NCBI GenBank assembly: GCA_002269645.1
Contig: NIVC01002989.1
Coordinates: 62,001 to 126,000 of the forward strand
Source: Macrostomum lignano
Lineage: Eukaryota
Length of the DNA: 64,000 nucleotides
Reading direction: 5' to 3'
A program made the position numbers and the translations under genes. Below, in pieces: positions 3,001 through 60,630 of this stretch. Position 1 is the first letter of the stretch; each line of letters begins with the position of its first letter. The notes below the pieces were generated by a model. It was given only the letters and a program-made list of their open reading frames with translations, was not told the origin of the DNA and searched no databases.

Positions 3001-6000
3001 GTCTCTTGAGCATCTGTCGCATATCTTGGCCTTGCAACAACTCCAATTCTTGTGTTATATTTCATTCGTGTATATTAAAACTACAGATTTATGAATTTTT
3101 GTAAAAAAATACTTGAAATTGTAGCCAGTTCCTTCAAATATCTTCGCATTTGGTATACGCAATTTTTGAAGCGCAGCTTCAAAGCCAAGACCGATAAATG
3201 CAAGATCTCCTCTCTTATCAGCCTGCAGACTGTGAGTATTGGTGGTCTGTTCATCAGCCCACGAATCATAAGCAACCACCCCAGATCTCGTCCCCCGCGA
3301 TGTACATCAGCCCAAGAATCATAGTGACCACCCTCAGATCTCGTCCCTCGCAATGTACATCAGCCCACGAATCATAGCGACCACCCTCAGATCTCGTCCC
3401 TCGCAATGTACATCAGCTCACGAATCAAAAGCGAGCACCCTCAGATCTCGTCCCTCGCAATGTACATCAGCCCACGAATCATAGCGACCACCCTCAGATC
3501 TCGTCCCTCGCAATGTACATCAGCTCACGAATCAAAAGCGAGCACCTCCAGATCTCTTCCCCCGCAATGTGTACATCAGTTCACAAACATAAGCAACCAT
3601 CCCTAATCCCCATCCAAAATACACGCTTTTACGCAAATGAATTTTTATTACCATTTTTATTTATTGGCTACAATACATTTTTTGAATTGATGCTTTACGT
3701 GACTAGTTTTTTGTATTGTTCCATTTTTGCGATGGGTCCTTTATATACCTTTCTGATAAGTAGTATAGGTTGATTATTTCTTAAAGCAACTGAACTTTCT
3801 AGTGCCATTTCCAATATTTATACATGTTTCAGCTGTTTCGCAAAAATATTTGCGAAATTGGTACAGTCAAAATCTTAGACGCGACTATAATGCCAAGGCT
3901 AGGCAGTCTAAGCTCAATTCGTTAATCTTCGTGCAGACTGTGAGTCTCTGGGGGTCTTCTAAATTCATGTTTGTCCCTCATTTTAGCCTCAATGTACACT
4001 CTATTCCGGCCAGCCCCCCCCTAGCCTCAATGTACACTTCTTTCCGACCAGCCCCCCTAGCCTCAATGTACACTTCTTTCCGACCAGCCCACCTAGCCTC
4101 AATGTACACTCTATTCCGGCCAGCCCCGCCCCCCCCCCTAGCCTCAATGTACACTTCTTTCCGGCCAGCCCACCTAGCCTCAATGTACACTATTCCGACC
4201 AGCTCCCCTAGCCTCAATGTGCACTATTCCGATCAGCTCCTACTAGCCTCAATGTACACTATTCCGATCAGCTCCTACTAGCCTCAATGTACACTATTCC
4301 GACCAGCTCCCCTAGCCTCAATGTACAGTATTCCGATCAGCTCCCCTAGCCTCAATGTACACTATTCCGACCAGCTCCCCTAGCCTCAATGTACACTATT
4401 CCGACCAGCTCCCCTAGCCTCAATGTACACTATTCCGACCAGCTCCCCCCTAGCCTCAATGTACACTATTCCGACCAGCTCCCCTAGCCTCAATGTACGA
4501 GCTATTCCAGCCAGCCCCCTAGCCTCAATGTACACTCTATTCCAGCCAGCCCCCCCCCTTAGCCTCAGTGTACACTTCTTTCCGGCCAGCCCACCCTAGC
4601 CTCAATGTACACTCTATTCCGGCCAGCCCCCCCCCCTAGCCAACCTAGCCTCAATGTACACTATTCCGACCAGCTCCCCTAGCCTCAATGTACACTATTC
4701 CGACCAGCTCCCCTAGCCTCAATGTACACTATTCCGACCAGCTCTCCTAGCCTCAATGTACACTATTATTCCGACCAGCTCTACTAGCCGCAATGTACAC
4801 TATTATTCCGACCAGCTCTCCTAGCCGCAATGTACACTATTATTCCGACCAGCTCTCCTAGCCTCAATGTACACTATTATTCCGACCAGCTCTCCTAGCC
4901 TCAATGTACACTATTATTCCGACCAGCTCCTACTAGCCTCAAGGTAAATAAGTCACTCCTGGCTTGAATATGCACTCGATGTGCATATATGCTCGATCGT
5001 TTGATACTATTCAATTCAGAAATAGTTAAAAAGGCTCCACTATTAATTGCGATGATTCGGCAACCGGTTTGAAACCTTTCAATTGATATTTCTATTCCTT
5101 CAAATTATCCATACCATGATGCCTGACAATATTTTTACAGCAGTGTCTATGAAATACCTGCGCAGTTGGTACACGCAGCGTTATAGGCGTGATTTTCTTG
5201 CCAAAGCTAGGCAGTCCAAGTTTAATTCGTTATTAAAAGTACAAATTGTGAGTTAGCTTGGGGCGCTTCACCTTCAGGCCTTCATCCTTGCACCTTCAGG
5301 CCTTCATCCTCACAACTTCAGGACTTTTTTCTCATACCTTCAGGCCTTTGTTCTCACACCTTCAGGCCTTTGTTCTCACACCTTCAGGCCTTCATTCTCA
5401 CACCTTCAGGCCTTCGTTCTCACACCTTCAGGCCTTCGTTCTCACACCTTCAGGCCTTCGTTCTCTCACACATTCAAACCTTCATCCTCACACCTTCAGG
5501 CCTTCGTTCTCACACCTTCAGGCCTTCGTTCTCACACCTTCAGGCCTTCGTTCTCACACCTTCAGGCCTTCGTTCTCACACACCAGGCCTTTATTCTCAC
5601 ACACCAGGTCTTCATCCTCACACCTTCAGGCTTTCATTCTCACACAACAGGCCTTTATCCTCACACCTTCAGTTCTTCATTCTTGCCTTCAGTTCTTCAT
5701 TCTCACCTTCAGGCCTTCATTCTCACCTTCAGTTCTTCATTCTCACCTTCAGGCCTTCATTCTCACCTTCAGGCTTTCATTCTCACACAACAGGCCTTTA
5801 TCCTCACACCTTCAGTTCTTCATTCTCACCTTCAGGCCTTCATTCTCACACCTTCAGGCTTTCATTCTCACACACCAGGCCTTCATACTCACACACCTTC
5901 AGGCCTTCATTCTCACACATTCAGGCCAGCCCCCCATTCTCACCCGCCCGCCTGTCCCAACTCCCCCACCCACGCAGAAGCTGAACCGTCGCCAGAAAAG

Positions 6001-6361: not shown

Positions 6362-7467
6362 CTTTGAACTCTTTAATTAGATTATTGAGCCTGCCGATAT
6401 GTTGCGTAAATAACTTTATAAGTGTGGTCATCGAAATTGTACAATGAGGAGCTTCCTAAACTAAAAGATCGTTGTAGCAATGATGAATTAAATTAATATT
6501 GAATAAAATTATTGCAGCTCCATTACTATAGATGTGAAGAAGTTGAAGATAACTACCGATATGTTGCGTAGATAAATTTACGCAATAATAAGGTTATCGA
6601 AGCTGTACAATGAGGAACAATAATAACACATCGAAAATAATTTATTACGGATTTAAATAAGTTGAAGATATGCCGATATGTTGCGTAAAATATTTTTTTA
6701 ATTTTTGCGAGTAGTCAGTGATGATGATTGCAAAGGGGCACATCTGTATTTTAATTTAAACATTTAATTTGAAAAATAATAAATTGAATGCTTACTTCCT
6801 ACTTTAAGTAGCCTTCGATACAGGCTAGTCTAATAATATTATAATCTCTAGTGTTTTCTATTATTAGTAGCCAGCAATGCTTTTAATTTTTTTATTTGCA
6901 CAATTTTTATGCATTGTCCCACCTCCCCATCAGAATACCGACATCAGCTGTTCCGCACTTTGAACTCGACAATGATCTTCAATCCGGTTCATCTAAACTC
7001 AGCATGTGTTATTTCGTTAATTCAGAACTGGATTTTACTTGTAATCATTCTTATGCTAAACAGTTAACGCAATGCATCCTACTCGTAAATAAACATCTAA
7101 GATATAACCTACCTACTTTACTGACCAAAGTAGCAGGTTAAACATTTAAGCTGTTCATTTTGATCACCTTGTGTACCTCTGCCTAACCTGTATTTGGCAG
7201 ACTTTCTTGGCTTTTGTTTGTAAGTATGACTAATTTGAATGTTCAATTCAATTACTGTTTGCATTTTCATCGTTTATCTTGTCAACAATACTTGCATTGT
7301 CAATTTGACATTTCACAAACAGAATGACAAATACACCCAGTCACATTCGTAACTCTCCGTTTCTGTTGCCAAGCTCAGTGATGGCACTTTTAACTGTTAT
7401 TTCTCTGAGCAGGGTTTCTATTTGTTTGATGTTTTTAATAGATTGTTGTACTAACGTAGGCTAAACT

Positions 7468-7547
7468 GTGTCTGTCTGTGTCTGTCTGTCTGTGTGTCTG
7501 TCTCTGTCTGTCTGTCTGTCTGTCTGTCTGCTGTCTGTCTGTGTGTG

Positions 7548-7602
<55 letters not shown>

Positions 7603-7638
7603 GTGTCTGTGTGTCTGTCTGCTGTCTGTCTGTGTGTG

Positions 7639-7693
<55 letters not shown>

Positions 7694-7765
7694 GTGTCTG
7701 TCTCTGTCTGTCTGTCTGTGTGTGTGTCTGTCTCTGTCTGTCTGTCTGCTGTCTGTCTGTGTGTG

Positions 7766-7802
<37 letters not shown>

Positions 7803-7805
7803 TAG

Positions 7806-7838
<33 letters not shown>

Positions 7839-7871
7839 TAGTGTCTGTCTGTCTGTCTGTCTGTCTGTCTT

Positions 7872-7910
<39 letters not shown>

Positions 7911-7973
7911 TAGTGTCTGTCTGTCTGTCTTAGTGTCTGTCTATCTGTCTGTCTGTCTGTCTGTCTGTCTGTG

Positions 7974-8013
<40 letters not shown>
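7468..8013. repeat. (GTCT)n microsatellite
   Basis: Direct reading; ends at the acceptor gtctttacag (8020). Confidence 0.95.
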
Positions 8014-8014
<1 letters not shown>

Positions 8015-8124: not shown

Positions 8125-11100
8125 ATGGCCGCAGCAGTTCAATCGCCTTCTTCAATGCTAAACCAGTCGGCCGCGTCGGGCGGCGTGGGCTTCTCAGCCC
8201 TGACCCTGTTCGAGTCCACCCTGCTCAACGCGGGCATGCTGCTGGAGAGCATGCCCCTAGAAGACCTGGTGTCCGCAATGCGTCTGGTACAGAATCTGCA
8301 GCACCAGCTGGTTGACGTCATGCACCCGTCAGCCTGCCAGCTGCGTCATCAGCTCGACGAAGCCAATCGTCAACTAACGTTGCTACACGATCGGGCCACT
8401 TCAGCCGCTGTTGCCATGGAAACGGCGGCCAAACCTCCGCCTAGCAAGCGGCACTGCGCCAGCAACAGCTTCAAAGCCGAGCCGAGCGAATCCAGTCAGG
8501 CCCCAGCCTCCGCCTCCTCCCTGCTGGTTGATGAAGAAAAATTCGCCATAGGTGGTGCCACCGGTAGCGTTGGCGATTTTGTCGACGAGACATTTGACGA
8601 TGGAGCGGACGATTGCGTCATGATTATGGGGGAGGAGAGCGGCGGCAGCAGTAGTCGGCAGTTTCAGCAGCGCACCAGGCAGCGAGGCCAACAGCATCAA
8701 CACGCTGGCCGGTCATCCCTGATTGAATGCGACGATCAGCTGTCCGCTGCAGCTGCTGCGGCCGCTGCCGCCGCAGTCTCCGGCGGTGGCGCCGATGTTC
8801 GGGTGAGGACTGCGAAGTTTTCCTACTTGATTTATTTATTTTCTTTAATTTATGTATTTTTCTTGCAAATTTAGCCAAAAAAATCCATGGAGACGCTGAG
8901 TTATCTTTACTTAAGTAGTATGATAGAAAATTTCGTTTTTAGTAAGATAATAAGAGTTTAGTTTTTTAGTAAGAATCGAGGAGTGAGCTACTTAAAGTAA
9001 CTTGCAATTTAGTTAATCTAAGATATGATTTTTTAAAAATAAATTTTTAGAACCTTCTTAAAGACACTTACAAGAATCTGCGCGGTAGCGGGCCTCATCT
9101 GTTTGATTTCTCCAAACCGTAAGTTCGATAAAAGACTTGCATTATTATTTAGTTTAGTGATTAATTGGCGCTCTAATGACTCCCTAAATGTACTATTAAA
9201 CAGCTGGGAGCACACGGTCAATCAAGCTGTAGCCCAGACGGTTATCGAGCAAGCTCAATTGGCGTCCGGTATTGTTGCTGAGCCCGACACGTGGAAAGGT
9301 CAGATTTTCAAATATTCTATTGTTACGTCATATTTTTTATTTCGTAAATTAAAACAGATTAAAAGTCGTTTCTCCCTACTTAAAGTAGGAAATTTTTAAT
9401 AATTGTTGCGTCAGTTTTTTATCATACAATCAATTATCATATCATATTGCTATTAATATTATTTTACTCCTACTGACAGTAGGAATCTGAATAAAATGCG
9501 TGAGTTTTAATAATTTTATAATAAAAAATTTGCTCCTGCTCGAGTTTGAAGTCTGCTAATAATGTTAAAATAACTGAGCATTTCAATTTACTTTGTAAAT
9601 TGCTAAAGCTATATATGAATTAATTAACTAATTAAATTATCCAATTTTGTGTACTAATTGTCATACACTCGTGCCAATGAGTAGTAGATCTTCACAACTC
9701 GCTAGCGATTTATTTTATATTCATAATAATAAGTGTCTCAAATTGATGCGACTTTGCCAATGCACGACTCGCTGTAGTGATGGCCTCAAATTTGTATTAC
9801 TCTACTAAAAAGCTGCTGGCCTCCTGGGTCAACAACAGTCGAAAATATAAGCGAAGAAATGGGGTACGTGCTACATCGTTTTTATTATAATGCTGCTCAT
9901 TGCTTCAGTGACTTCTATCAACGAGTTCAATATCTTTACAAGTGTTGGATGAGCGCTGCTTTGTGTTTAAGGCCCTCCAGAGGACAGGGAAGGGATTAGT
10001 ATTGACTGCCCACCATAGGACCCTAGTAGCCTACCAATGGACCTTGGAACTGGAAGCCCAGCATATGACCTTGGAACTGGAAGCCCACTATAGGACCTTG
10101 GAACTGGAAGCCCACTATAGGACCTTGGAACTGGAAGCCCACTATAGGACCTTGGAACTGGAAGCCCAGCATATGACCTTGGAACTGGAAGCCCACTATA
10201 GGACCTTGGAACTGGAAGCCCACTATAGGACCTTGGAACTGGAAGCCCACTATAGGACCTTGGAACTGGAAGCCCAGCAGAGGACCTTGGAACTGGAAGC
10301 CCACCATAGGACCTTGGAACTGGAAGCCCAGCATATGACCTTGGAACTGGAAGCCCACTATAGGACCTTGGAACTGGAAGCCCACTATAGGACCTTGGAA
10401 CTGGAAGCCCAGCAGAGGACCTTGGAACTGGAAGCCCACCATAGGACCTTGGAACTGGAAGCCCACCATGGGACCATGGAACTGGAAGCCCACCATAGGA
10501 CCTTGGAACTGGAAGCCCACTATAGGACCTTGGAACTGGAAGCCCACTATAGGACCTTGGAACTGGAAGCCCACCATAGGACCTTGGAACTGGAAGCCCA
10601 CTAGAGGACCTTGGAACTGGAAGCCCACCATAGGACCTTGGAACTGGAAGCCCACTAGAGGACCTTGGAACTGGAAGCCCAGCAGAGGACCTTGGAACTG
10701 GAAGCCCACCATAGGACCTTGGAACTGGAAGCCCACCATAGGACCTTGGAACTGGAAGCCCACTAGAGGACCTTGGAACTGGAAGCCCACTATAGGACCT
10801 TGGAACTGGAAGCCCAGCAGAGGACCTTGGAACTGGAAGCCCAGCAGAGGACCTTGGAACTGGAAGCCCAGCAAAGGACCTTGAAACCGGAAGCCCACCA
10901 TAGGACCTTGGAACTGGAAGCCCACCATAGGACCTTGGAACTGGAAGCCCACCATAGGACTGGGGAAGGTTGAAGGCTTACCAGAGGACCAAGAGAAGGT
11001 GTTGCAGTTGCTTCAGTAAGTCTTTAATCGAAAATTCAATGTAGATTAATACTGAAAACGTATTAGTTCACTGTATCAAAGTGAACCCAGGCAGCCTTCA

Positions 11101-12602
11101 CTCGTTCGGTGGAGCCACATGCCATCAAGGCTGAAATGTCGATTAAACAACTCAGATATAACTATATAATTTGCTATAAACTGTCACTCAGGCGCTTGTC
11201 GCAGCCAGTTTATTAACGAGACTAAATGGATTGGTATTAGACGCAGATCTGCCGCTAGGTGCAACAAGCTCAAACAGGTATCCGTGTGCTGTTGAACTTT
11301 AATTGAGTTTGCCCGATATCTGCCCATTGTTAAATCTATAGCATACTTCAATCTCTGCAATATGCTTCAATAGTTAAGCTATTGTAATTGCTTTTATGCT
11401 AGTTATAATCATCATTTCATTTTTTCGTATGAACTACTCAAGGCGAACTTCGAAAATGCGTTTTTACAACTTTGTTAAATTGGCGCAAGGATTCCAGGAA
11501 ATATCTGCGCAGGAACAGCGTAAGATGCTAGTGCCCGGATACACCTAGATCAGGATATTGATCCCTAAGCTCCCACAGTGAGGATATCGATCCCTAAGCT
11601 CCCACAGTGAGGATATCGATCCCTAAGCTCCCACAGTGAGGATATCGATCCCTAAGCTCCCACAGTGAGGATATCGATCCCTAAGCTCCCACAGTGAGGA
11701 TATCGATCCCTAAGCTCCCACAGTGAGGATATCGATCCCTAAGCTCCCACAGTGAGGATATCGATCCCTAAGCTCCCACAGTGAGGATATCGATCCCTAA
11801 GCTTCCACAGTGAGGATATCGATCCCTAAGCTCCCACAGTGAGGATATCGATCCCTAAGCTCCCACAGTGAGGATATCGATCCCTAAGCTCCCACAGTGA
11901 GGATATCGATCCCTAAGCTCCCACAGTGAGGATATCGATCCCTAAGCTCCCACAGTGAGGGTATCGATCCCTAAGCTCCCACAGTGAGGGTATCGATCCC
12001 TAAGCTCCCAGAATGAGGATATCGATCCCTAAGCTCCCACAGTGAGGATATCGATCCCTAAGCTCCCACAGTGAGGATATCGATCCCTAAGCTCCCACTG
12101 TGAGGATATCGATCCCTAAGCTCCCACAGTGAGGATATCGATCCCTAAGCTGCCAGGCATGTCTAACTGTCTGCAATCCTGTGCAACACATTCTGCCCAG
12201 AAACTGAGCCGCAGGCAAAAAGCGTTCGAGTCGCTGCTGCCGTCCCTGACCCCGGACGATCTTGAGCAGTACCGTCTGGTGCTCACACGGGATCTCACAT
12301 CGTCGGACGAGGAGGACGAGTCTGAGAACTTGCGCGTCCGCCAGCTAGTGTGGGAGTCCGACCGGGTCAGAGAGATCAAATCCGCTCTGGACTCGATGTA
12401 TCTGCGGCGATTCGCCACCGTCAAGCAGCGCGCCCAGCTAGAAAAATGTCGGCGCGACGCGGGCGCCCGCAGCGCCAGACTGGTGCCGCCTGGCGCGCCT
12501 GACTGGGCGATTCGACCAGACTTTCAGCAGCAGCAGCAGCAGCAGCACCAGTCCATGGGCGGCGGCTCCGAGCCAGATGGCAACGGCAGCGGTTTCGAGT
12601 GA
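8125..12602 (+). CDS. Gene 2: tandem paralogue of gene 1 (C14orf93-like). Exons 8125(ATG)-8802, 9051-9118, 9204-9298, one of the cassettes (9299-11519), 12201-12602
   Basis: Junctions are CGG|gtgagg, tttttag|AAC, CC|gtaagt, aaacag|C, TGG AAA G|gtcaga and ctgcccag|AAA, with TGA at 12600-12602; phases are consistent. The product NLLKDTYKNLRGSGPHLFDFSKPWEHTVNQAVAQTVIEQA...WK-[cassette]-KLSRRQK...VLTRDLTSSDEE...VRQLVWESDRVREIKSALD...SARLVPPGAPDWA is clearly homologous to gene 1. The start codon is uncertain; an acceptor at 8020/8021 could add upstream sequence. Confidence 0.75.
9778..9863 (+). CDS. Gene 2 cassette exon (86 nt, phase 1->0): VMASNLYYSTKKLLASWVNNSRKYKRRNG
   Basis: ctcgctgtag|TG ... 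GGG|gtacgt; open in the required frame. Confidence 0.7.
10040..10960. repeat. 27-bp minisatellite (GGACCTTGGAACTGGAAGCCCACTATA and variants)
   Basis: More than 30 units between gene 2 cassettes; source of the LELEAHYRT/GFQFQGP artefact ORFs. Confidence 0.95.
11192..11277 (+). CDS. Gene 2 cassette exon (86 nt, phase 1->0): GACRSQFINETKWIGIRRRSAARCNKLKQ
   Basis: ctgtcactcag|GC ... CAG|gtatcc; same 86-nt length; splicing gives WK-GAC, recalling KGAC in human C14orf93 as I remember it. Confidence 0.7.
11443..11519 (+). CDS. Gene 2 cassette exon (77 nt, phase 1->0): GELRKCVFTTLLNWRKDSRKYLRRNS
   Basis: ctactcaag|GC ... AGC|gtaaga; its W-x-x-x-SRKY-x-RRN end matches the 9778 cassette. The AAG acceptor is weaker. 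Confidence 0.6.
11555..12150. repeat. 29-bp minisatellite (GAGGATATCGATCCCTAAGCTCCCACAGT)
   Basis: About 20 near-identical units in the last intron of gene 2. Confidence 0.95.
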
Positions 12603-12699: not shown

Positions 12700-13320
12700 T
12701 ACCTGAAGCCACCTCCTGAAGCTAACCTCCCCTGAAGCCACTCTCCTGAAGATACCCCCTCAAAAGATGCTCCTGAAGCTACCCTCCCTGAAGCTACCCT
12801 CCTGAAGCTAACCTCCCCTGAAGCCACTCTCCTGAAGATACCCCCTCAAAAGATGCTCCTGAAGCTACGCTCCCTGAAGCTACCCTCCCTAAAACTACCC
12901 TCCTGAAGCTACTCTTCTGAAGATACCCTCCCTCAAAGTTGCCCCTGAATCTGCCCTTCTGAAGCTAACCTTTCTTAAAGCCACTCTCCTAAAGCTACCC
13001 TCCCTCTGAACATACCCCTGAAGCTATCCCTCTGAAGATACCCCTGAAGCTATCCTCCTTCTGATGATACCCCTGAAGCTATCCTCCTTCTGATGATACC
13101 CCTGAAGCTATCGTCCCTCTGATGATACCCCTGAAGCTATCGTCCCTCTGATGATACCCCTGAAGCTATCCTCCCTCTGAAGATACCCCTGAAGCTACCC
13201 TCCCTCTGATGATACCCCTGAAGCTACCCTCCCTCTGATGATACTCCTGAGGCTACCCCTGAAGCTACCCTCCCTCTGATGATACTTCTGAGGCTACCCC
13301 TGAAGCTACCCTCCCAGCCT
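12700..13320. repeat. Degenerate CTGAAGCTACCCT-core minisatellite
   Basis: Imperfect tandem units downstream of gene 2. Confidence 0.8.
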
Positions 13321-23822: not shown

Positions 23823-24551
23823 TCAAGCGTCTTTCTTCACCTCCTGCTCCTGGCCCTCCAGCCTGGCCAGCTTCTTGCGCAGCTGTTCGTTCTCCTCGGC
23901 CAGCTCGTCGAACGCCCGACCAGCGCTGGTGCCCTGCGACGTCATTGCCTCCAGACTGGCCTGGGCCTTGCGCAGCTCCGCCTCGGTGTCCTTCAGCCGG
24001 TCGCGCAGCTTCTTAACTTCATCTTTAGTAGCCTGAGCGTCGGCGTCTCCGCCTCCGGCTCCAGCAGCGGCGGCCGACGTCGAAGAGGTTGAAGACTCCA
24101 TGAGCCGCTTAGCCGTGATGGTGGCGCCGTCCAGCTGTCGCTGAGCAGCCAGAAGGTCGGCCTCGGTCAGAGCCCGCTGCGACACGGACCGCACCATCCA
24201 CTTGAGCACAAGCCAGAGCAGCAGGGCGCCGCCAGCTATGTAGAGATTGCGCTGAGCTCGGAACATTCGCATCAGGCAGAGCGCGTGGCCCTGCGGGTTG
24301 ACTTTCTCTTCCACTTGGTCGGCCTCTAGCGAGTGCTTCCTGGCGCTGCGGAAGCCGTCAAGCACGGCCAGCACTAGCAGGGCCAGGAACATGTTAAAGT
24401 ACACGTTGCCCCAGGCGTCCAGGCGTCTCAGCAGGCGGGAACGGAATATCTTGCGCCAGCGCTGTACGCTGAACACTGGCAGCATTAGGGCTATCGCTGC
24501 GGCTATCTCAGCATAGAGAAAGCCGGCCACAATTGTCCACTGGAGAGTCAT
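23823..24551 (-). CDS. BCAP31: B-cell receptor-associated protein 31/29 homologue (ER membrane protein), single coding exon
   Basis: Starts MTLQWTIVAGFLYAEI...LPVFSVQRWRKIF. Contains MRMFRAQRNLYIAG, three hydrophobic segments, a C-terminal coiled coil and a terminal KKDA (KKxx ER-retrieval) motif. Confidence 0.95.
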   Translation of the reverse strand: MTLQWTIVAGFLYAEIAAAIALMLPVFSVQRWRKIFRSRLLRRLDAWGNVYFNMFLALLVLAVLDGFRSARKHSLEADQVEEKVNPQGHALCLMRMFRAQRNLYIAGGALLLWLVLKWMVRSVSQRALTEADLLAAQRQLDGATITAKRLMESSTSSTSAAAAGAGGGDADAQATKDEVKKLRDRLKDTEAELRKAQASLEAMTSQGTSAGRAFDELAEENEQLRKKLARLEGQEQEVKKDA

Positions 24552-27500
24552 GACTAACTAAGCTGGGATTAGCGGAGCTGCATGCATTAATATAAGATGC
24601 AGTTTGGTACTTATTTTTCTATCAGAAAGTACATGCCTAACACCCGGCCGGGGTGGCGAGAGGCCTGGCCAAGATAACTCGCAAAAATGCCGACCCAAGA
24701 AACACAGATGTAGTACTAATTAGATTTCGAGGCATTTAGCCTTAACAATACAGTTATAGTTACTCCTTCCGGTTACCTAAAATTTCATAAGTAAGTCACA
24801 TTTTGGCAAAAAGTTGCATGGCTGGGTGAAATTTCGACATTGGGCATGTATGTATCAGAAGCATCAATACTACAAATCAAAGCCTCATGGTGAAAATTCT
24901 ACTATTAGTAGTAATACACAATAGGCATCAATGGACAAATTCAGGGTAAGATTTTTGGCAGCAAAATAAGATTTTATTGTTAAGAGTGAAATTTACTTTA
25001 GTAATTGCTTTATTTGTGCCATAAGCAATAACCTTAGTGATATAGATAAGACTTGAGTGCCAATTAATTGTCATAAATATGGTTTCAATGTCAATTTAGC
25101 TATATAAATGGCACTATATACAACATAATACTATACATTGTGTACACTATTGAGATAGGCCTTATTCTTTATTCTTTAACAATGATTTCCTATAAAGTAT
25201 TGTATTTGAAAGTATGCCAATTTGTTTAACCATGTATAAAATCAGAAATATTGTAAATATTAAAAATTAATATCTCAGAGGATAGAAATTAGCCCTGGGA
25301 CACTATTGACTAAATAATAAACAATTGGTAACCATAGTGTTACATTGATTGCAATTTGTCTAAATGATTTATTTTTTATTATAAAAAACTAGCTAAACTC
25401 TAATTATAATAATTTTTTTAAATTCAAACTGCCATATTTAACTTTTTAAATGTTGTATCAATGTTATAACTATTGAAAAATTATATCACAAAACACATGT
25501 GCAACACAAATTGACTTAAAATACACTGGCTATACAACTTAGTTTTAACTGAAAATGCAAGTTTTTGCAATAACTTACCTAAAAACAAACTAAAAAAATC
25601 TTGATTTGTTATAAAATTTTGTCAAAAAGTTGAAATTGTCAAAAAGGCATAATCAGTTTTGAGATCCAGACCTAAGCTACCACAATTAATGATAGCTATA
25701 TTAGCTAGATTGATTAGTACTAGTACTTATAGTTTGGTATATAGGAAATATAAGATTTTTTATATATTCATTTTTGACTTAAATCTAGGCTTTTTATTAT
25801 TGCAAAAAGTGACTACAACTAATATAAGGTATCTAATCTTAAATATTATCACAATACTACAATAGCTAACCAAGCCAATTGAAAATTCATTAGTAGATAT
25901 TTAATCTATCTTAGTAGATAGTTGGAACATATTTAATACATCTAATCATTCATCTAATACATATGAATTTGATCTTGTAATTCCAATAAATATATTGTGA
26001 CTATCACCTTTTTGACTATTATCTTTTTGTCAATCTATTGCCCTTTTAATCAGTTTCAAGTCATTTTTATCTAAAACTTGTTTTTTATTGATATTTATGA
26101 TATAAATCCTTTTACTTAAGTTAACCAATTTTAGTTTTGTAAAATCTATGTTCAATAATATGTAATAGGTCTCAGTTTTATAATGAAATTTCTTAGAAAA
26201 TTGAATTTAAAAATATTATTATTATATTATTATATTATATTACATAAATATTATAAATATTTCTTATACTCAATAGATTTTGTATATTGTTGTTTGTTTT
26301 AAAGAGTAAACTATAGTAGAAGAAATAGCCCTAGCACAACTTTGGTTAGTCTTTAGGGTTAGGCCTATTATAGACACTATCACAACTTTTGATAGCAGCA
26401 ATTGAGATTTAAAGAGAGGGGTTTGAGGCCATAGTGTGGAAGGATTTCTGTATACAACAGAAGGTAAATTTTCATTTTGGCCTGTTGTACGATAGTATGA
26501 CAGGGATTGGAAAATGGTACTAGTGTTGTACGACAGAGTTAGAGTTTAAGGAAGTGCTGTATGACAAAAATAGTGGCACTTACATAGTAATGTAAGGTGT
26601 TGGTAGTAAAAGTTGGTAGTAAAAAGTCAACTTTTTGAATATGTGGGTAGGTGCGGGAAATTCTTGATATTGCATTTTTTTAATATGCAAAGTAAAACAA
26701 CAGATATATTGTACTTTTCTGCTTGCAATGTCAAGTATAGTTTTACGCCAATAAAATTGAATTTAAGAGTTTGTACGAATATAATACTGATAATTTAAAT
26801 TACCCTTTGAGTGGAAAAGTGCAACTATTGAATTTTTACTTCTTTGCTTCAACGCAATACGTTAACAACGATGTTATGAGTTAGTTACGAGACTACGAGT
26901 ATCTGGTACTGGTGTCCGACTGTCCATCAAAGGAAGACTAACTATGTCTATACTTTATATATGAGTCGTATGACATTGACAAGTGTACGACAGACAGACA
27001 TGTAACATGTTTACATGTACAACAGTGTACGACATAGCACCCCCCAAAAATTAGCGATGTACGACATGTACGACAGGCGATCCCTGTGTATGACGGAGAT
27101 TTCTGGCGTATACCCATCTTTCCGCACTATGGGTTTGAGGCTTGAGCCCTTTGACGACAACTTGGTGCCAGCTTTAGGTTTAAGTGATATTAGAGAAGTA
27201 GCCCCCTATATCAACTTAGTGACAGTGGGTGATTGTTAAAGAGAGAAATTAGACCCCTATGTCAACTTGGTAGCATAAGTGGAATTTTAGAGAGAGTAGA
27301 AGTACAACCACTATCATAACTTGGTGGCTTACTTAGTGGTGGAATTGAAGTCAACCCTATGTCAAATCTATCATTTTTAGCTTTTTATCCTTTAGGCCCC
27401 TATCTATGAATAAAAATATCCAAAATGGTAAAACCTTTGCAATATAGCCTAAAAGACAGTTTTGACCTAAAATGCATGGGGTGGGGACCACAGGGACCAC

Positions 27501-53376: not shown

Positions 53377-56300
53377 TTATACTTCCGCGTCAGCATCCTT
53401 GGGCCAGGTGATGTCGAGATTGTCAGACTCCGGATGCAGAGTGTAGAATCCAACCATGTCGGCGGCGGCAGCGGCGGCGGTCAAGGCGGATTTGCGCGAA
53501 CTGGACGCCACGGCTCCCGTCGCGGCGGGGGGACTGGCGGAGGCGGCAGGCCCTGCAGCGGCACCGGCGGATGTAGCAGCGGTTCCGCCGCGACCGTGAT
53601 GCCGGCAGTAGGTGTGGTCGGCGTAGGGCAGAGCGTAGGGCACGGGAGTGTCGGACCAGAGGCTGGCGGAGGTGGCTGCGGCCGGCTGCCTGGCAGCCCG
53701 GCCCGGCCCGGACGGCCGGACGGCGGCGGCTTTGCGACGTCGGCGACGACCTGCGGCGTTGAGCGCTAAGTCGAGCGTTACGCACTGGCGCATGCGGCAG
53801 CGCTGCCGCTCCAGCAGGCGATTCCTGCCGCCGTATTTCGGCATGTCCAAACAGAAGTCGCAGCGGCCGCAGTCGCTGACCCGAAGGCAGGGCGCGCACC
53901 GGCCGCAGCGTCTGGCAGCTGGGCCGTCGCCAGCGCCGCCAACGCCCAACCCATCGTCAATGTCGTCATCGTCCAAATCCGAGTCGTCGGAGTCGTCGTC
54001 GTCGTCGGAGATGCCGCGCCGATGATCGTCGTCGGTCTCGGTGGACGAAGCGGCCGAGGAGCGGCTGCGGCGCTCGGCGGGCAGCAGAGGTCCTCCGCCT
54101 GCGGCAGCCCGAAATCGTCTTCGTCCTCATCCTCATTGGCATTGGGCACCAGCGCTGGCATCGACGGCTGTTGCTGCTTCCGTGAGTTTTTTGTTGCCTG
54201 CTGTTGTTGTTGCTGCTGCTTGCCGGCACTGGCGGCCCGGCGGCCGCGCTTCTTGGGCTCACCAGCCGGAGCGGCGGCGTTAGAAGCGGCAGCAACTGCA
54301 GCGGCCTGTTTAGAAGTTGAATCGGTGGTCGCCGCCGATTTTCTCTTTCTTCCTCTGGCTGGCGGAGTCGGCGCCGATGCCGCTGCTGCCGCCTCGGATG
54401 CCCGCTTGCGCTTGGCTGCTGGCTGGCCGCTGTGATTAGCGCCGGATTTTGAAGCCTTCGCAGAACTGGCCGCGGCGGTTTTCTTGTCCTCGGAGCCGGC
54501 CTGCTGGGACTGGCCGCGCTTCCGGGAGGCTGAGCCAGTCTGAGCGACGGCAACCGGCGCCCGGCCTTTCTTATACTGAATAGCCAAGCCCGGATGCTTT
54601 TTCAAGCACTTTGAGCAATAGAACTTGTTAATAGCGGCCGCGTCCTTCGAGCTGACCCCGATGCAGTCGCCGTGGTACCACTCCTCGCATTTGTCGCAGG
54701 CGATCATAAATCTGTCAATGTCGGTAGATCGGCACACGCACCAGGCCTGCAGGTCGCTAGAGGCTGAGGAGGCCGACTTCTTTTTTGAAGCGGCTGTACC
54801 GCCGCCGCCGCTCTGTTGCCGCTGCTTGCTGGCAGCGCCGCGTTTCTAAGAAAAGGGAGAAGCGAAGGACATTATGAAGCTGTAGAGTTGAGGAGATATC
54901 TAATGAGACAATTGAGCCACTATTTGCATAGTTTACCTAAAAACTTTATTAGAATTGTCCATTAAAAACAATCAAGAAGTGTTTTGATTGTTACAGAACA
55001 TAACTATTAGACCAAAGAAAAATTATTACTTAAGGAAAAAAGGACAATCAATTAAGGATTTGTTTATCTTTTAACTAAGTTGCATAGCTGGTGTTATTTA
55101 ACAGGTTGTGCACATGTAATGACCTAGTAATAATTCACAACCATAGGTTATTGTGATGCAATGCCAGAACCAGTATTATCCAATAAAAAGCAGGCCTATA
55201 AGAACATTAATAATACAACTGTACTTTTTACTGTACAGAGACTAATAAGATTTTAAAGTTACTTTTTGTGTTTTTATTGCATTTGATAACTGTTATGTGC
55301 CTAAGTAAAAAGACACTCCTACTTTTGAATATTGGTAAATATAATTTATTGATACAAAAGGGTCTAATACAACTAAAATAGCCAAAACCTTTACAACAAA
55401 ACAATAATAGCAAGTCCTAATTCTAGAACAGTGTTCCCACTCAGCAACCTTCATTTTTTTGTGCCAAGCCATTCATTTTTGCGCCATGGATATTTTTTGC
55501 ACCACTATCACTCTTTACCTCTAAGGCTATAATGTAGTATGATGCCCATTGAGACATTAAAAACACTCAAATACCTAATATTCATGCATCTCAATCATAA
55601 ATCATCCAATTTTTGATGAGATAAAACACTACAACTTGGCAAAAAATGGGTCAAAAAATGGCAACAACAGCATGGGCATCAGACTATTAATTTCTCTAAA
55701 TCAAAATTGCAATTATAAAACATATTAGTTTCTAAAAAAGCATCCAAAAATGCGGAAAAGGGTTACAATTTAGGCACAAATTTTCCACATTTTTAGATTT
55801 GCATTGAACTTTATTAATTATGCATTCACGCCATATTGCCTCATTTTCAGGCATGGTACAAATTTGTGCCAAAGTGGGAACACTGCTCTAGAATACATAA
55901 GAAAGGCTATAAAAATAGATTTGTAATTATAATTAAGCATATTAAAGGTTGGTACTTGACTAGGGGTAACAAAAACTAATCTTATTAAAGACTAATAATT
56001 TAGTAGGATTTTTAAAGTTATTTTTAAGTATTTTTTCTATTTTATTTGATTTTAGTGGCTGTGGAGGCAATAAAGCTAACCTAAAAAGTAAAAAAAGATT
56101 TTGCAAAAGTTTTAAGCATATATATTATCAAAGACTGGTTAAAAATTAAAAAATTATATCGACTTTACATTCCAGTATCAGGAATATATGCTTATATACC
56201 ACTGTACACTAAAATAAAATTTCCCTTCCTACGACCTAGCTTCTATATGCAAATGGACTTAAGCAAATTTAGCAAAAATCTTGTCAAATTAGGAAATAGA

Positions 56301-58637: not shown

Positions 58638-60143
58638 ACAACAACAACAACAGAGTACGCTGTCAGTTCGCAAAAGCAGCGTCAGATGGCGCGCTTCGAA
58701 GCTTGGGCGCGAACAAAGGCCGCACCGCCGGCAGAGTCCGGGGCGCCGGCGTCAGCCAGCAGACAGTCGACGTAGCGCCGAGTCCTCGCCTGTCCCCGCC
58801 GGTAGGGTGCCTGCAACGTAAGTAGGAGCACCTCCTGCACCGGCTCCGGACAGTAGGCCTCAGCGCGGATGACGTGGCCTGCCAGCTGGAGTCGCCGACG
58901 GCGCAGCAGATCGCTAGGACGGGCCAGGCCGGCGCGATGATAGAGCGCCGTGTTGGTGACTCGCTCGTTGCCGATCTTGAAGGCGGCGCGCAGCAGGCCA
59001 GCGTGCGCCGCGTCGACTTGAGCCTCGAGCGAGTCTGTCAGCGTCCAGGTCTCGGCGTTGTATAACAGGACGGTCTCGATCACCGCCTGGAACAGCGCCG
59101 CCCTGGAACAGCGGCGGTCCGGTAGGGCCTCGGACTGCAGGACTGACCTTATAGAACGAAAGGCAGCCCAGGCAAGTCCTCGGCGACGCCGCAGATCCTC
59201 GCGGACGTCGGGAACCAGACCGCCAAGGTAGACGAACTGCTGGCATCTTGGAAGCTCACTCGCCTGTCCGTTAGCGCCTCGGCAGAAGATTGCAGCCTCG
59301 GTGTCGTCCGGCACGCATAGCACGACGGTTTTCTGCGTGTTGACCACCAGGCCGACGCTCGCCGCAACGGCAACCAGCCTATCCAGCTGTCGTTGGGCGC
59401 CCTTGACGGTCGAGGACAGCAGGGCAAGGTCATCGGCGTAGCCAAGCACGCTGAGCCGTCTCTCCGGTTGGCGTCGACCCACGCGTCGCCGCAGCAGGAA
59501 GCCGTCGTCGTTGGAAGGCAGAGCAGTCCGTAGCACCCAGTCAAGCACCAGAATAAATAGGAACGGCGCTAGCGTATCTCCCCAGAGCACCCCGGAGGAT
59601 GTCTCGAAGAAATCCGATAGGCCGTCCGGTGTTGAGACAGCAGCCGTCGTGCCGTGGTACAGCGCCATGACAGCAGAAATCAGCAGCTCTGGCACGTTGT
59701 ACGCACGGAGCACCTCTGGGAGCGCGTCCCTCACGACCGAGTCAAAGGCCTTCCTGAAATCGACGAAGATCAGGATTAGGGTCAACTGGCGGATGTGCGC
59801 CTCCTCGATGACTCGCCGAAGAGCCAGGATCTGCGTCACTGTGCCGCGATGGGGCCGGAATCCGTTCTGCTCAGGCCGCAGGTAGGGGTCCAGCACAGGC
59901 TGTAACCGCGATAGCAGCATGTGGTTGAACAGCTTCGCGGCGCAGGACTGTAGGCAGATGCCTCGATGCTCCTCGAGCTTGGTGGTGCCCGGCTTCTTTG
60001 GAATGGCGACGATGTGCGCCGTGGTCCATTCGTTTGGCGCCACCTCACCGGAAAGCACGCGGTTCATCACTCTGGCGACCTCAGTGGCCACGCAGTGGAT
60101 CCGCAGCGCCTCGGTGGGTAGTGACGAGCGCCTCGGTGGGTAG
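58638..60143 (-). mobile_element. 5'-truncated RTE-like non-LTR retrotransposon (reverse transcriptase ORF 58682-~60120)
   Basis: RT motifs IVAIPKKPG, RGICL, QNGFR, FVDFRKAFDSV, GVLWGDTLAP, YADDL, plus the RTE-typical YNAETWTL; short 3' UTR and (TTG)n tail at 58638-58652. Confidence 0.9.
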
Positions 60144-60630
60144 CAATATATGTTGCACATCTACACATTTTACATGTACCAAGAAGGACCAATCTGTAGT
60201 AACTGCAGGATCGACGTACGTAAAACTCAAAGATCGTGTAAATTTTTACGAGGTTGATAATCCGGGAAAAAACACTGTGGAGACGACAGGAAAAATCAAT
60301 TTTTTTCATCCCAAAATCTATGATTGAATTTGATCTGAGGCAGTGAATATTAATTACCATTTTAGCGTGCACATGTTGATATAGTTGTGCAGTGTGAGAA
60401 GTTTCATTTTTATATTTTTTCATCGCCCAAGCCAAGTTGAGGATACGATCACAAGTGAAATTTTTGTTTTGTTCCTCAAGAAGCATGCAGCAAAACTTAA
60501 AAATGAAACTTTCAGTCTACACAACAACAACAACATGAAACAACAACAACAACAATAACAACAACAACAACAAAGTCTATTTGTCAGCCAAGTCAAGCGT
60601 CTCGGGATGATGTGACCTACTACTAGTTGC

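Follow-up and report, generated by a model that had tools for sequence, protein, structure and literature searches.

In the Drosophila Dscam1 exon 4, 6 and 9 clusters, and in those of 14-3-3zeta and Mhc, mutually exclusive exons are associated with docking-selector RNA pairing, and in tropomyosin (exons 6a/6b) and SNAP25 (exons 5a/5b) such exons swap one helix for another. To our knowledge, most non-arthropod clusters of mutually exclusive exons are pairs, and clusters of more than two members are uncommon outside the arthropods. Clusters formed by tandem exon duplication constitute a general class (Ivanov & Pervouchine 2018, PMC6071210; Hatje et al. 2017, PMC5740500). Here we describe a probable cluster of three mutually exclusive exons, cassettes 2a, 2b and 2c, in what we call gene 2 of the flatworm Macrostomum lignano, the second of two adjacent members of one protein family in a 64,000-nucleotide stretch of contig NIVC01002989.1 (the whole of which is called the window, and whose numbering is used throughout). 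The array resembles the described clusters in that its exons are tandem, share one pair of flanking constant exons, have the same phases and similar lengths, and replace a single structural element, with the reading frame penalizing inclusion of none or of two. It departs from them in belonging to an uncharacterized flatworm family, in having three members (and at least eight in a paralogue), and in the strong divergence of its copies, 2b not being detectably similar to 2a or 2c. As in Dscam1, 14-3-3zeta and Mhc, there are more than two alternative exons, of which one would be used per transcript to give isoforms differing in one module; however, the gene 2 array is far smaller and has no detected docking/selector complementarity, and unlike in Dscam1 the cassette is a helix segment rather than an Ig half-domain and there is no evidence of stochastic choice. 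With tropomyosin and SNAP25 it shares equal-phase exons that would swap a stretch of a long alpha-helix and tune a binding surface while leaving the remainder of the protein unchanged, although the gene 2 helix lies in a domain without a solved relative and in an uncharacterized protein. As a mode of alternative splicing the gene 2 cluster is unremarkable; the protein family in which it occurs is an unstudied one. A literature search found no paper naming these gene identifiers, and among the papers listed for Macrostomum lignano together with 'mutually exclusive' none was about splicing.

All exons of gene 2 are on the forward (+) strand. Coding exon 1 (8125–8802) starts with the ATG at 8125 and ends at a phase-0 donor, GTGAGG; exon 2 (9051–9118) encodes NLLKDTYKNLRGSGPHLFDFSKP and is conserved throughout the paralogues as well as in homologues from sea star, Lingula and oyster; and constant exon 3 (9204–9298) ends ...TGG AAA G/GTCAGA, that is, with Trp-Lys and one further base before a phase-1 donor. 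The last exon (12201–12602) follows ...cccag at a phase-0 acceptor, begins KLSRRQKAFE and terminates with the TGA at 12600–12602, and its boundary is kept in all paralogues as well as in Patiria, Lingula and Saccostrea. Joined through cassette 2a, these exons give a protein that is 100% identical over its full length to NCBI PAA53999.1 (P0001; record title 'hypothetical protein BOX15_Mlig000065g7, partial [Macrostomum lignano]'), which marks the window as nuclear DNA of the flatworm. We note that the common donor at 9298 reads G/GTCAGA, with a C at +3, in both gene 2 copies examined, where the other paralogues have GTGAGT, GTGAGA or GTAAGT; this weak donor could have a bearing on cassette choice or on intron retention.

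The three cassettes lie between donor 9298 and acceptor 12201, on the same strand as the constant exons. Cassette 2a (9778–9863, 86 nt, phase 1 to 0) encodes VMASNLYYSTKKLLASWVNNSRKYKRRNG and has the donor gtacgt, cassette 2b (11192–11277, 86 nt) encodes GACRSQFINETKWIGIRRRSAARCNKLKQ and has a weak donor, gtatcc, and cassette 2c (11443–11519, 77 nt) encodes GELRKCVFTTLLNWRKDSRKYLRRNS and has the donor gtaaga. The first-pass annotation of this DNA, made from the letters alone, had proposed these exons, and on re-check its coordinates, splice phases and peptides for gene 2 all proved correct, as did its observation that the motif W-x3-SRKY-x-RRN closes two of them, namely 2a and 2c. Two intronic minisatellites separate the exons, one between 2a and 2b (10028–10960, a 27-nt unit x 34.6, with a different copy number in the second copy of the gene described below) and one between 2c and the last exon (11552–12155, a 29-nt unit x 20.8); by eye, both carry CCCAC on the same strand and appear non-complementary.

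Because every cassette length is 2 mod 3, only single inclusion keeps the frame: any one of the three alone leaves the frame open to the TGA and gives a protein of 439–442 amino acids, whereas inclusion of zero, two or three produces a frameshift and truncation. Taken alone, a frame that is open between an AG and a GT says little for an exon, and the 2.9-kb intron contains 15 such candidates of 59–125 nt, so that each cassette has to be judged by its homology, its conservation and its presence in database isoforms. On these grounds 2a, 2b and 2c probably constitute a credible and well supported cluster of mutually exclusive exons. The explanation we favor for it, and consider probable as a whole, is that a discrete exon of ancient origin (phase 1 to phase 0), encoding the mid part of a long alpha-helix just ahead of a conserved KLxRRQ motif, was duplicated in tandem within gene 2. 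Its three descendants would then serve as mutually exclusive alternatives between donor 9298 and acceptor 12201, exactly one copy restoring the frame of the C-terminal domain and any other outcome yielding a truncated protein. The isoforms would differ in 26–29 residues only, inside a predicted 49-residue helix, and the swap may alter an exposed surface that binds nucleic acid or an acidic partner or that functions in nuclear import.

Two of the cassettes are present in database proteins. Cassette 2a occurs in both NCBI proteins of the two gene copies, PAA53999.1 and PAA57317.1, and since the NCBI annotation of this assembly was built from a genome-guided transcriptome (PMC5730564) this use is transcript-based. 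Cassette 2c is used in the UniProt gene model A0A1I8IGX9 (P0013), which also uses the gene 1 cassette at 3833–3939. Alternative cassettes are found, too, among transcript-based proteins of the paralogues, as seen in P0006 and P0027 compared with P0028, P0002 compared with P0009, and P0004 and P0021 compared with P0022.

The cassettes differ greatly in how readily their relationships can be recognized. When each was compared with transcript-supported paralogue cassettes and with 1000 shuffles, 2b scored 61 (0/1000 shuffles as high), 2c scored 38 (p about 0.007) and 2a scored 29 (p about 0.10). An all-against-all comparison of 11 family introns, for which the antisense control has a 99th percentile of 38 and a maximum of 48, gave 2b scores of 61–64 with locus L002 and of 57 with L007 12733–12818, at the same position in these paralogues, and placed 2c at the threshold (a borderline 38 with a cassette of L004); 2a and the stretch 9299–9384, discussed below, fell short of it. 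Similarly, tblastn with 28 family cassettes against the gene 2 intron recovered 2b (E 5e-6 and 2e-5) and 2c (E 0.006), and these two only, with no further hidden or degenerate cassettes. Cassette 2b is thus a homologue of L007 12733–12818 and of the only cassette in L002, which is used in PAA93853.1. Within gene 2, 2a and 2c score 48 with each other (0/2000 shuffles as high) and by their sequences are clear paralogues, whereas 2b has no significant similarity to either in the shuffle comparison. In the W-x3-SRKY-x-RRN motif shared by 2a and 2c, 8/13 residues are identical although only 3 codons are, and the residues that 2b has in common with its paralogue relatives are likewise mostly in different codons; the same residues in different codons argue for long-term selection on the peptide. 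The relatives of 2b share a motif, RR[RKT][ST]A[AK][RK], seen in 2b itself, L002 11854–11936 and L007 10892–10974, 11739–11821 and 12733–12818 (e.g. IRRRSAARCNKLK and NRRTAARCNRMK). By eye we take this to recall the bZIP basic-region pattern N-x2-AA-x2-[CS]-R; there is no bZIP match in Pfam or by Foldseek.

A second copy of genes 1 and 2, about 97% identical to the window, is present at locus L001, as fits an assembly known to be redundant (PMC5730564), and provides a measure of conservation when differences are counted as events in unique sequence only. Constant coding exons differ by 5 events in 1243 nt (0.4%), the three cassettes together by 2 events in 249 nt (0.8%, both synonymous), and introns by 39 events in 1311 nt (3.0%). 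Both cassette changes are AGA>AGG in 2b (2/86), with none in 2a (0/86) or 2c (0/77), and the cassettes have fewer events than the introns (Fisher p = 0.029). All three thus appear, from this comparison, to be conserved between the copies in the manner of coding sequence. Taken together, the database use of 2a and 2c, the homology of 2b to paralogue cassettes and the coding-like conservation bear out the first-pass claim of a second cassette array in this gene, adjacent to that of its paralogue gene 1.

Several points weigh against three mutually exclusive exons. The only model with 2c is a fused run-on prediction of 1108 amino acids, in which gene 1, gene 2 and downstream sequence of the sister allele are joined and for which the type of evidence is not stated. 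The 2b peptide occurs in no protein of a 5.8-billion-sequence collection (not even three of its 5-mers in common), and the 2b donor, gtatcc, is weak. Cassette 2a is alone in having no significant match outside gene 2 in the paralogue comparisons, and the conservation test concerns one pair of copies with few substitutions (p about 0.03). Neither is there a sign of docking/selector pairing in the intron: its inverted repeats are only AT-rich low-complexity pairs, and RNAduplex between all of its unique segments gave nothing better than shuffles (|z| < 1.4). Steric exclusion would be unlikely for 2b and 2c, since the intron from 2b to 2c, the only one between cassettes that is free of a minisatellite, is 165 nt. 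Finally, transcripts that include the wrong number of cassettes encounter stops that lie either within the last exon or 44 nt ahead of the last junction. Under the exon-junction (50-nt) rule stops so placed are poor targets for nonsense-mediated decay, and mis-spliced transcripts would not be removed under this classical rule; such poor targeting fits the occurrence of skip forms in the databases.

Some of these points would also follow if only 2a were functional and effectively constitutive, with 2b and 2c as leftover duplicates that rarely or never enter productive mRNA. Both transcript-based NCBI proteins of the two copies carry 2a, and the poor donor of 2b, its absence from databases and the fused nature of the 2c model all agree with this account. 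However, leftover duplicates should not differ from their counterparts by as little as two synonymous changes (2b) or none at all (2c) where the flanking intron has diverged by about 3%, nor would they be expected to have retained open frames, the right phases and AG/GT boundaries. The identity of 2b with paralogue cassettes at the protein level despite different codons, and the demonstrable use of alternative cassettes in the sister genes, count further against it, and we think it unlikely that 2a alone is functional. Under the three-cassette reading we would expect 2b to be used, and single inclusion to be strict in vivo.

A different account treats splicing at this position mainly as an on/off switch, in which cassette skipping or intron retention generates truncated proteins without the C-terminal domain. 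Such forms do appear in public records. Clustering at 90% identity groups P0001 with four other proteins, of which three (P0011, P0012 and P0014) contain 2a followed by retained intron (window position 9864 onward), ending ...RRNGVRATSFLL at a stop, and the fourth is the 2c model A0A1I8IGX9; among the paralogues, P0035, P0036 and P0033 are cassette-skipping, frame-shifted proteins and P0020 is an intron-retention form. These skip and retention proteins have short frame-shifted tails and are without the conserved C-terminal domain, and their premature stops, as noted above, escape the 50-nt rule. The source transcriptome is, however, known to contain precursor mRNAs (PMC5730564), so that the retention forms may be unprocessed RNA; the public skip and retention proteins as a group may represent either such RNA or real truncated isoforms. 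A switch would moreover leave unexplained why several alternative in-frame cassettes are conserved. We therefore regard an on/off role as the principal function of this splicing as quite improbable, and mutually exclusive inclusion remains the preferred interpretation.

The first-pass annotation had further proposed that a change of donor produces a fourth variant: the weak 9298 donor (GTCAGA) would be skipped and GTAGGA at 9384 used instead, adding the stretch 9299–9384 (+; '2rt') to exon 3. The proposal is not without attractions. Next to the GTGAGT and GTAAGT donors of the paralogues, that at 9298 is weak, and reading past it gives GQIFKYSIVTSYFLFRKLKQIKSRFSLLK, open for exactly 86 nt to AAA/gtagga with an in-frame GT and with a stop four codons beyond; the resulting 29 amino acids, with a net charge of +7, are cassette-like in composition and would also restore the frame into KLSRRQK. 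However, a Lys/Phe/Ile-rich peptide is to be expected of AT-rich sequence, and 29 open codons have, by our own rough estimate, about a 10% chance in sequence of this kind. The stretch is not conserved in the second copy, an outcome that the first-pass annotation had itself named as counting against the variant. The corresponding frame there reads GQIFKYSIVTSYFYFGNKNRFKVVFPT to a stop: among the 5 differences in 86 nt (5.8%) are two deletions of 1 nt each and one TTA>TAA change, and the donor has become GTAGAA and is out of frame. Even if both deletions were assembly errors, the T>A change would still break the frame. This level of divergence is significantly above that of coding sequence (p = 2.5e-4) and does not differ from that of introns. 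The peptide has no significant similarity to any of the 28 cassettes by shuffles or tblastn (a score of 24 against the transcript-supported paralogue cassettes, p about 0.38), and it is present in no protein of the 5.8-billion-sequence collection (again not even three 5-mers in common). A coding role for 9299–9384 is thus highly improbable, and it appears from these comparisons to be ordinary intron, open by chance in this copy.

Gene 2 belongs to a protein family that is conserved across bilaterians. A profile search of 1.84 billion representative sequences identified 396 relatives at E <= 1e-3, including proteins of the sea stars Patiria and Acanthaster, the hemichordate Glandiceps, Branchiostoma, Lingula, Owenia and bivalves. 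Those with names are all 'uncharacterized', 'hypothetical' or unnamed and are without a credible Pfam family, and no Pfam match was obtained for the gene 2 protein or for 46 diverse members. In Patiria miniata XP_038047259.1, Lingula anatina XP_013390516.1 and Saccostrea echinata XP_061178516.1 the segment corresponding to the cassette is one discrete exon of 36–46 codons, directly before a last exon starting KLxRRQ (the Patiria exon, for example, encodes KACKTYFTSLKDKQRRQEQGTYKQHTDDARKRSRKYR). In Patiria the junctions were read directly, and their phases are those seen in Macrostomum. The exon logic is the same as in gene 2, with a constant exon reaching just past the conserved Trp region and a KLxRRQ last exon; the differences are that these genes have a single exon and no array, no second copy of the exon being present at the three loci, and that their upstream exon boundary is displaced by a few codons in the downstream direction relative to Macrostomum. 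Because the homologues hold a single exon, the array appears to be an amplification of an ancient exon, so far seen only in Macrostomum.

Structure prediction places the cassette within a single helix. A model of the full-length protein has a pLDDT of 60.9 and a pTM of 0.32, and an AlphaFold model of the domain only, from a 25-sequence alignment, a pLDDT of 91.3 and a pTM of 0.72. In this domain model the cassette residues, 57–85, fall wholly within a 49-residue helix (52–100) composed in order of DTWK, the cassette and KLSRRQKAFESLLPS. The cassettes carry net charges of +6 to +7, located mostly in their C-terminal halves, with more hydrophobic N-terminal halves. Foldseek found nothing below an E of about 1 in the PDB for the domain model, and nothing for the full-length model, and profile and sequence searches of PDB sequences were without a match. 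A relationship to MADF/Myb-SANT-like domains, suggested by the pattern PHLFDF...W...KYL..WY..L+RD, was considered and is unsupported by Pfam, PDB sequence searches or Foldseek. We have also disregarded the domain names attached in UniProt to near-identical members (CUT, PDZ, BEN, ARID, MADF-like, FHA, Rab-GAP TBC and Ribosomal_L28e), which are mutually inconsistent and none of which corresponds to a detectable domain; they look like annotation artefacts of fused or shifted gene models.

Comparison with seven further Macrostomum lignano loci (L001–L007) illustrates how widely this organization is shared. All seven have a phase-1 donor that follows the same Trp by one codon and a phase-0 acceptor ahead of KL[SG]RRQ[KR], and the number of cassette-like exons in between is variable: one in L002, one in L003, two in L004 (both used in proteins), four in L005 (11300–14402; the P0004 gene) and at least eight in L007 (6399–13495; the P0002/P0009 gene), examples in the last being 7890–7975, 9396–9481, 9846–9940, 10083–10165, 10892–10974, 11739–11821, 11938–12023 and 12733–12818. 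The L005 and L007 arrays are thus larger than that of gene 2. Gene 1 of the window (+) contains six cassettes, at 1653–1762, 2318–2424, 2872–2969, 3125–3231, 3833–3939 and 5141–5247, between donor 1230 and acceptor 5978. The tandem arrangement of a gene 1-type followed by a gene 2-type gene recurs in L001, L002 and L003, and L006 has two family members in tandem; elsewhere in the 64-kb window no further member of the cassette family was found.

The first-pass annotation had offered two histories for the gene 1 and gene 2 arrays, one in which an array predates the gene duplication and one in which the same helix was amplified twice independently. The arrays appear to predate the recent gene duplications, since many paralogues carry them, the gene 1 cassettes are matched colinearly at L002 and L003 (scores 40–101), and the 2b type is common to three gene 2-type genes. 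For gene 1 and gene 2 themselves, a common ancestral array and two separate amplifications are indistinguishable from these data, no pair of gene 1 and gene 2 cassettes being significantly similar in the shuffle comparison of these short and divergent peptides. The divergence of the copies may reflect selection for diversity at the cassette position, as was also suggested.

These observations have consequences for the family as a whole. An expanded family in a regenerating flatworm model bears such clusters at one conserved position, and as the homologous exon is single in sea star, brachiopod and oyster, there is a clean natural series from one to at least eight copies, suited to tracing the path from tandem exon duplication to regulated alternative splicing. 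The cassette is also the one segment that evolution treats as exchangeable in a conserved bilaterian domain, and offers a handle on the function of that domain. We speculate, as a possible if doubtful extension, that the family is a previously unrecognized diversification system with many paralogues, from 3 to at least 8 cassettes per gene (six in gene 1), and a swapped basic helix acting as the specificity determinant, for example in nucleic-acid or partner recognition; if so, it would yield dozens of isoforms with distinct targets. For annotation, the analysis corrects public records that give one isoform per gene together with several truncated or fused models.

Minisatellites with units of 20–53 nt and 6–35 copies fill most introns and intergenic DNA of the window. 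In addition to the two in the gene 2 intron they are located at 95–618, 3248–3603, 4135–4946, 5269–5927, 7469–8014 and 12702–13255 and through much of 14–50 kb, and they are present in other copy numbers at L001 than in the window. Several begin 0–170 nt downstream of a cassette donor (those of gene 1 at 3231, 3939 and 5247, and those of 2a and 2c). As simple and tandem repeats make up 15% of the genome (PMC5730564), the minisatellites may be a general property of the genome, not related to splicing. Downstream of the gene 1 stop there are, by eye, three copies of a motif beginning CCGATATGTTGCGTA (about 6393–6460, 6553–6625 and 6668–6690), in 3′ untranslated or intergenic sequence, the first two of which continue to ...GTACAATGAGGA about 40–50 nt further on. 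Other features of the window are all on the reverse (-) strand: a Bap31-family exon at 23826–24557 (E 2e-32), a PHD finger exon at 53781–54845 (E 4e-10), and a reverse-transcriptase open reading frame at 58685–60160 (RVT_1, E 2e-27) that is likely part of a retroelement.

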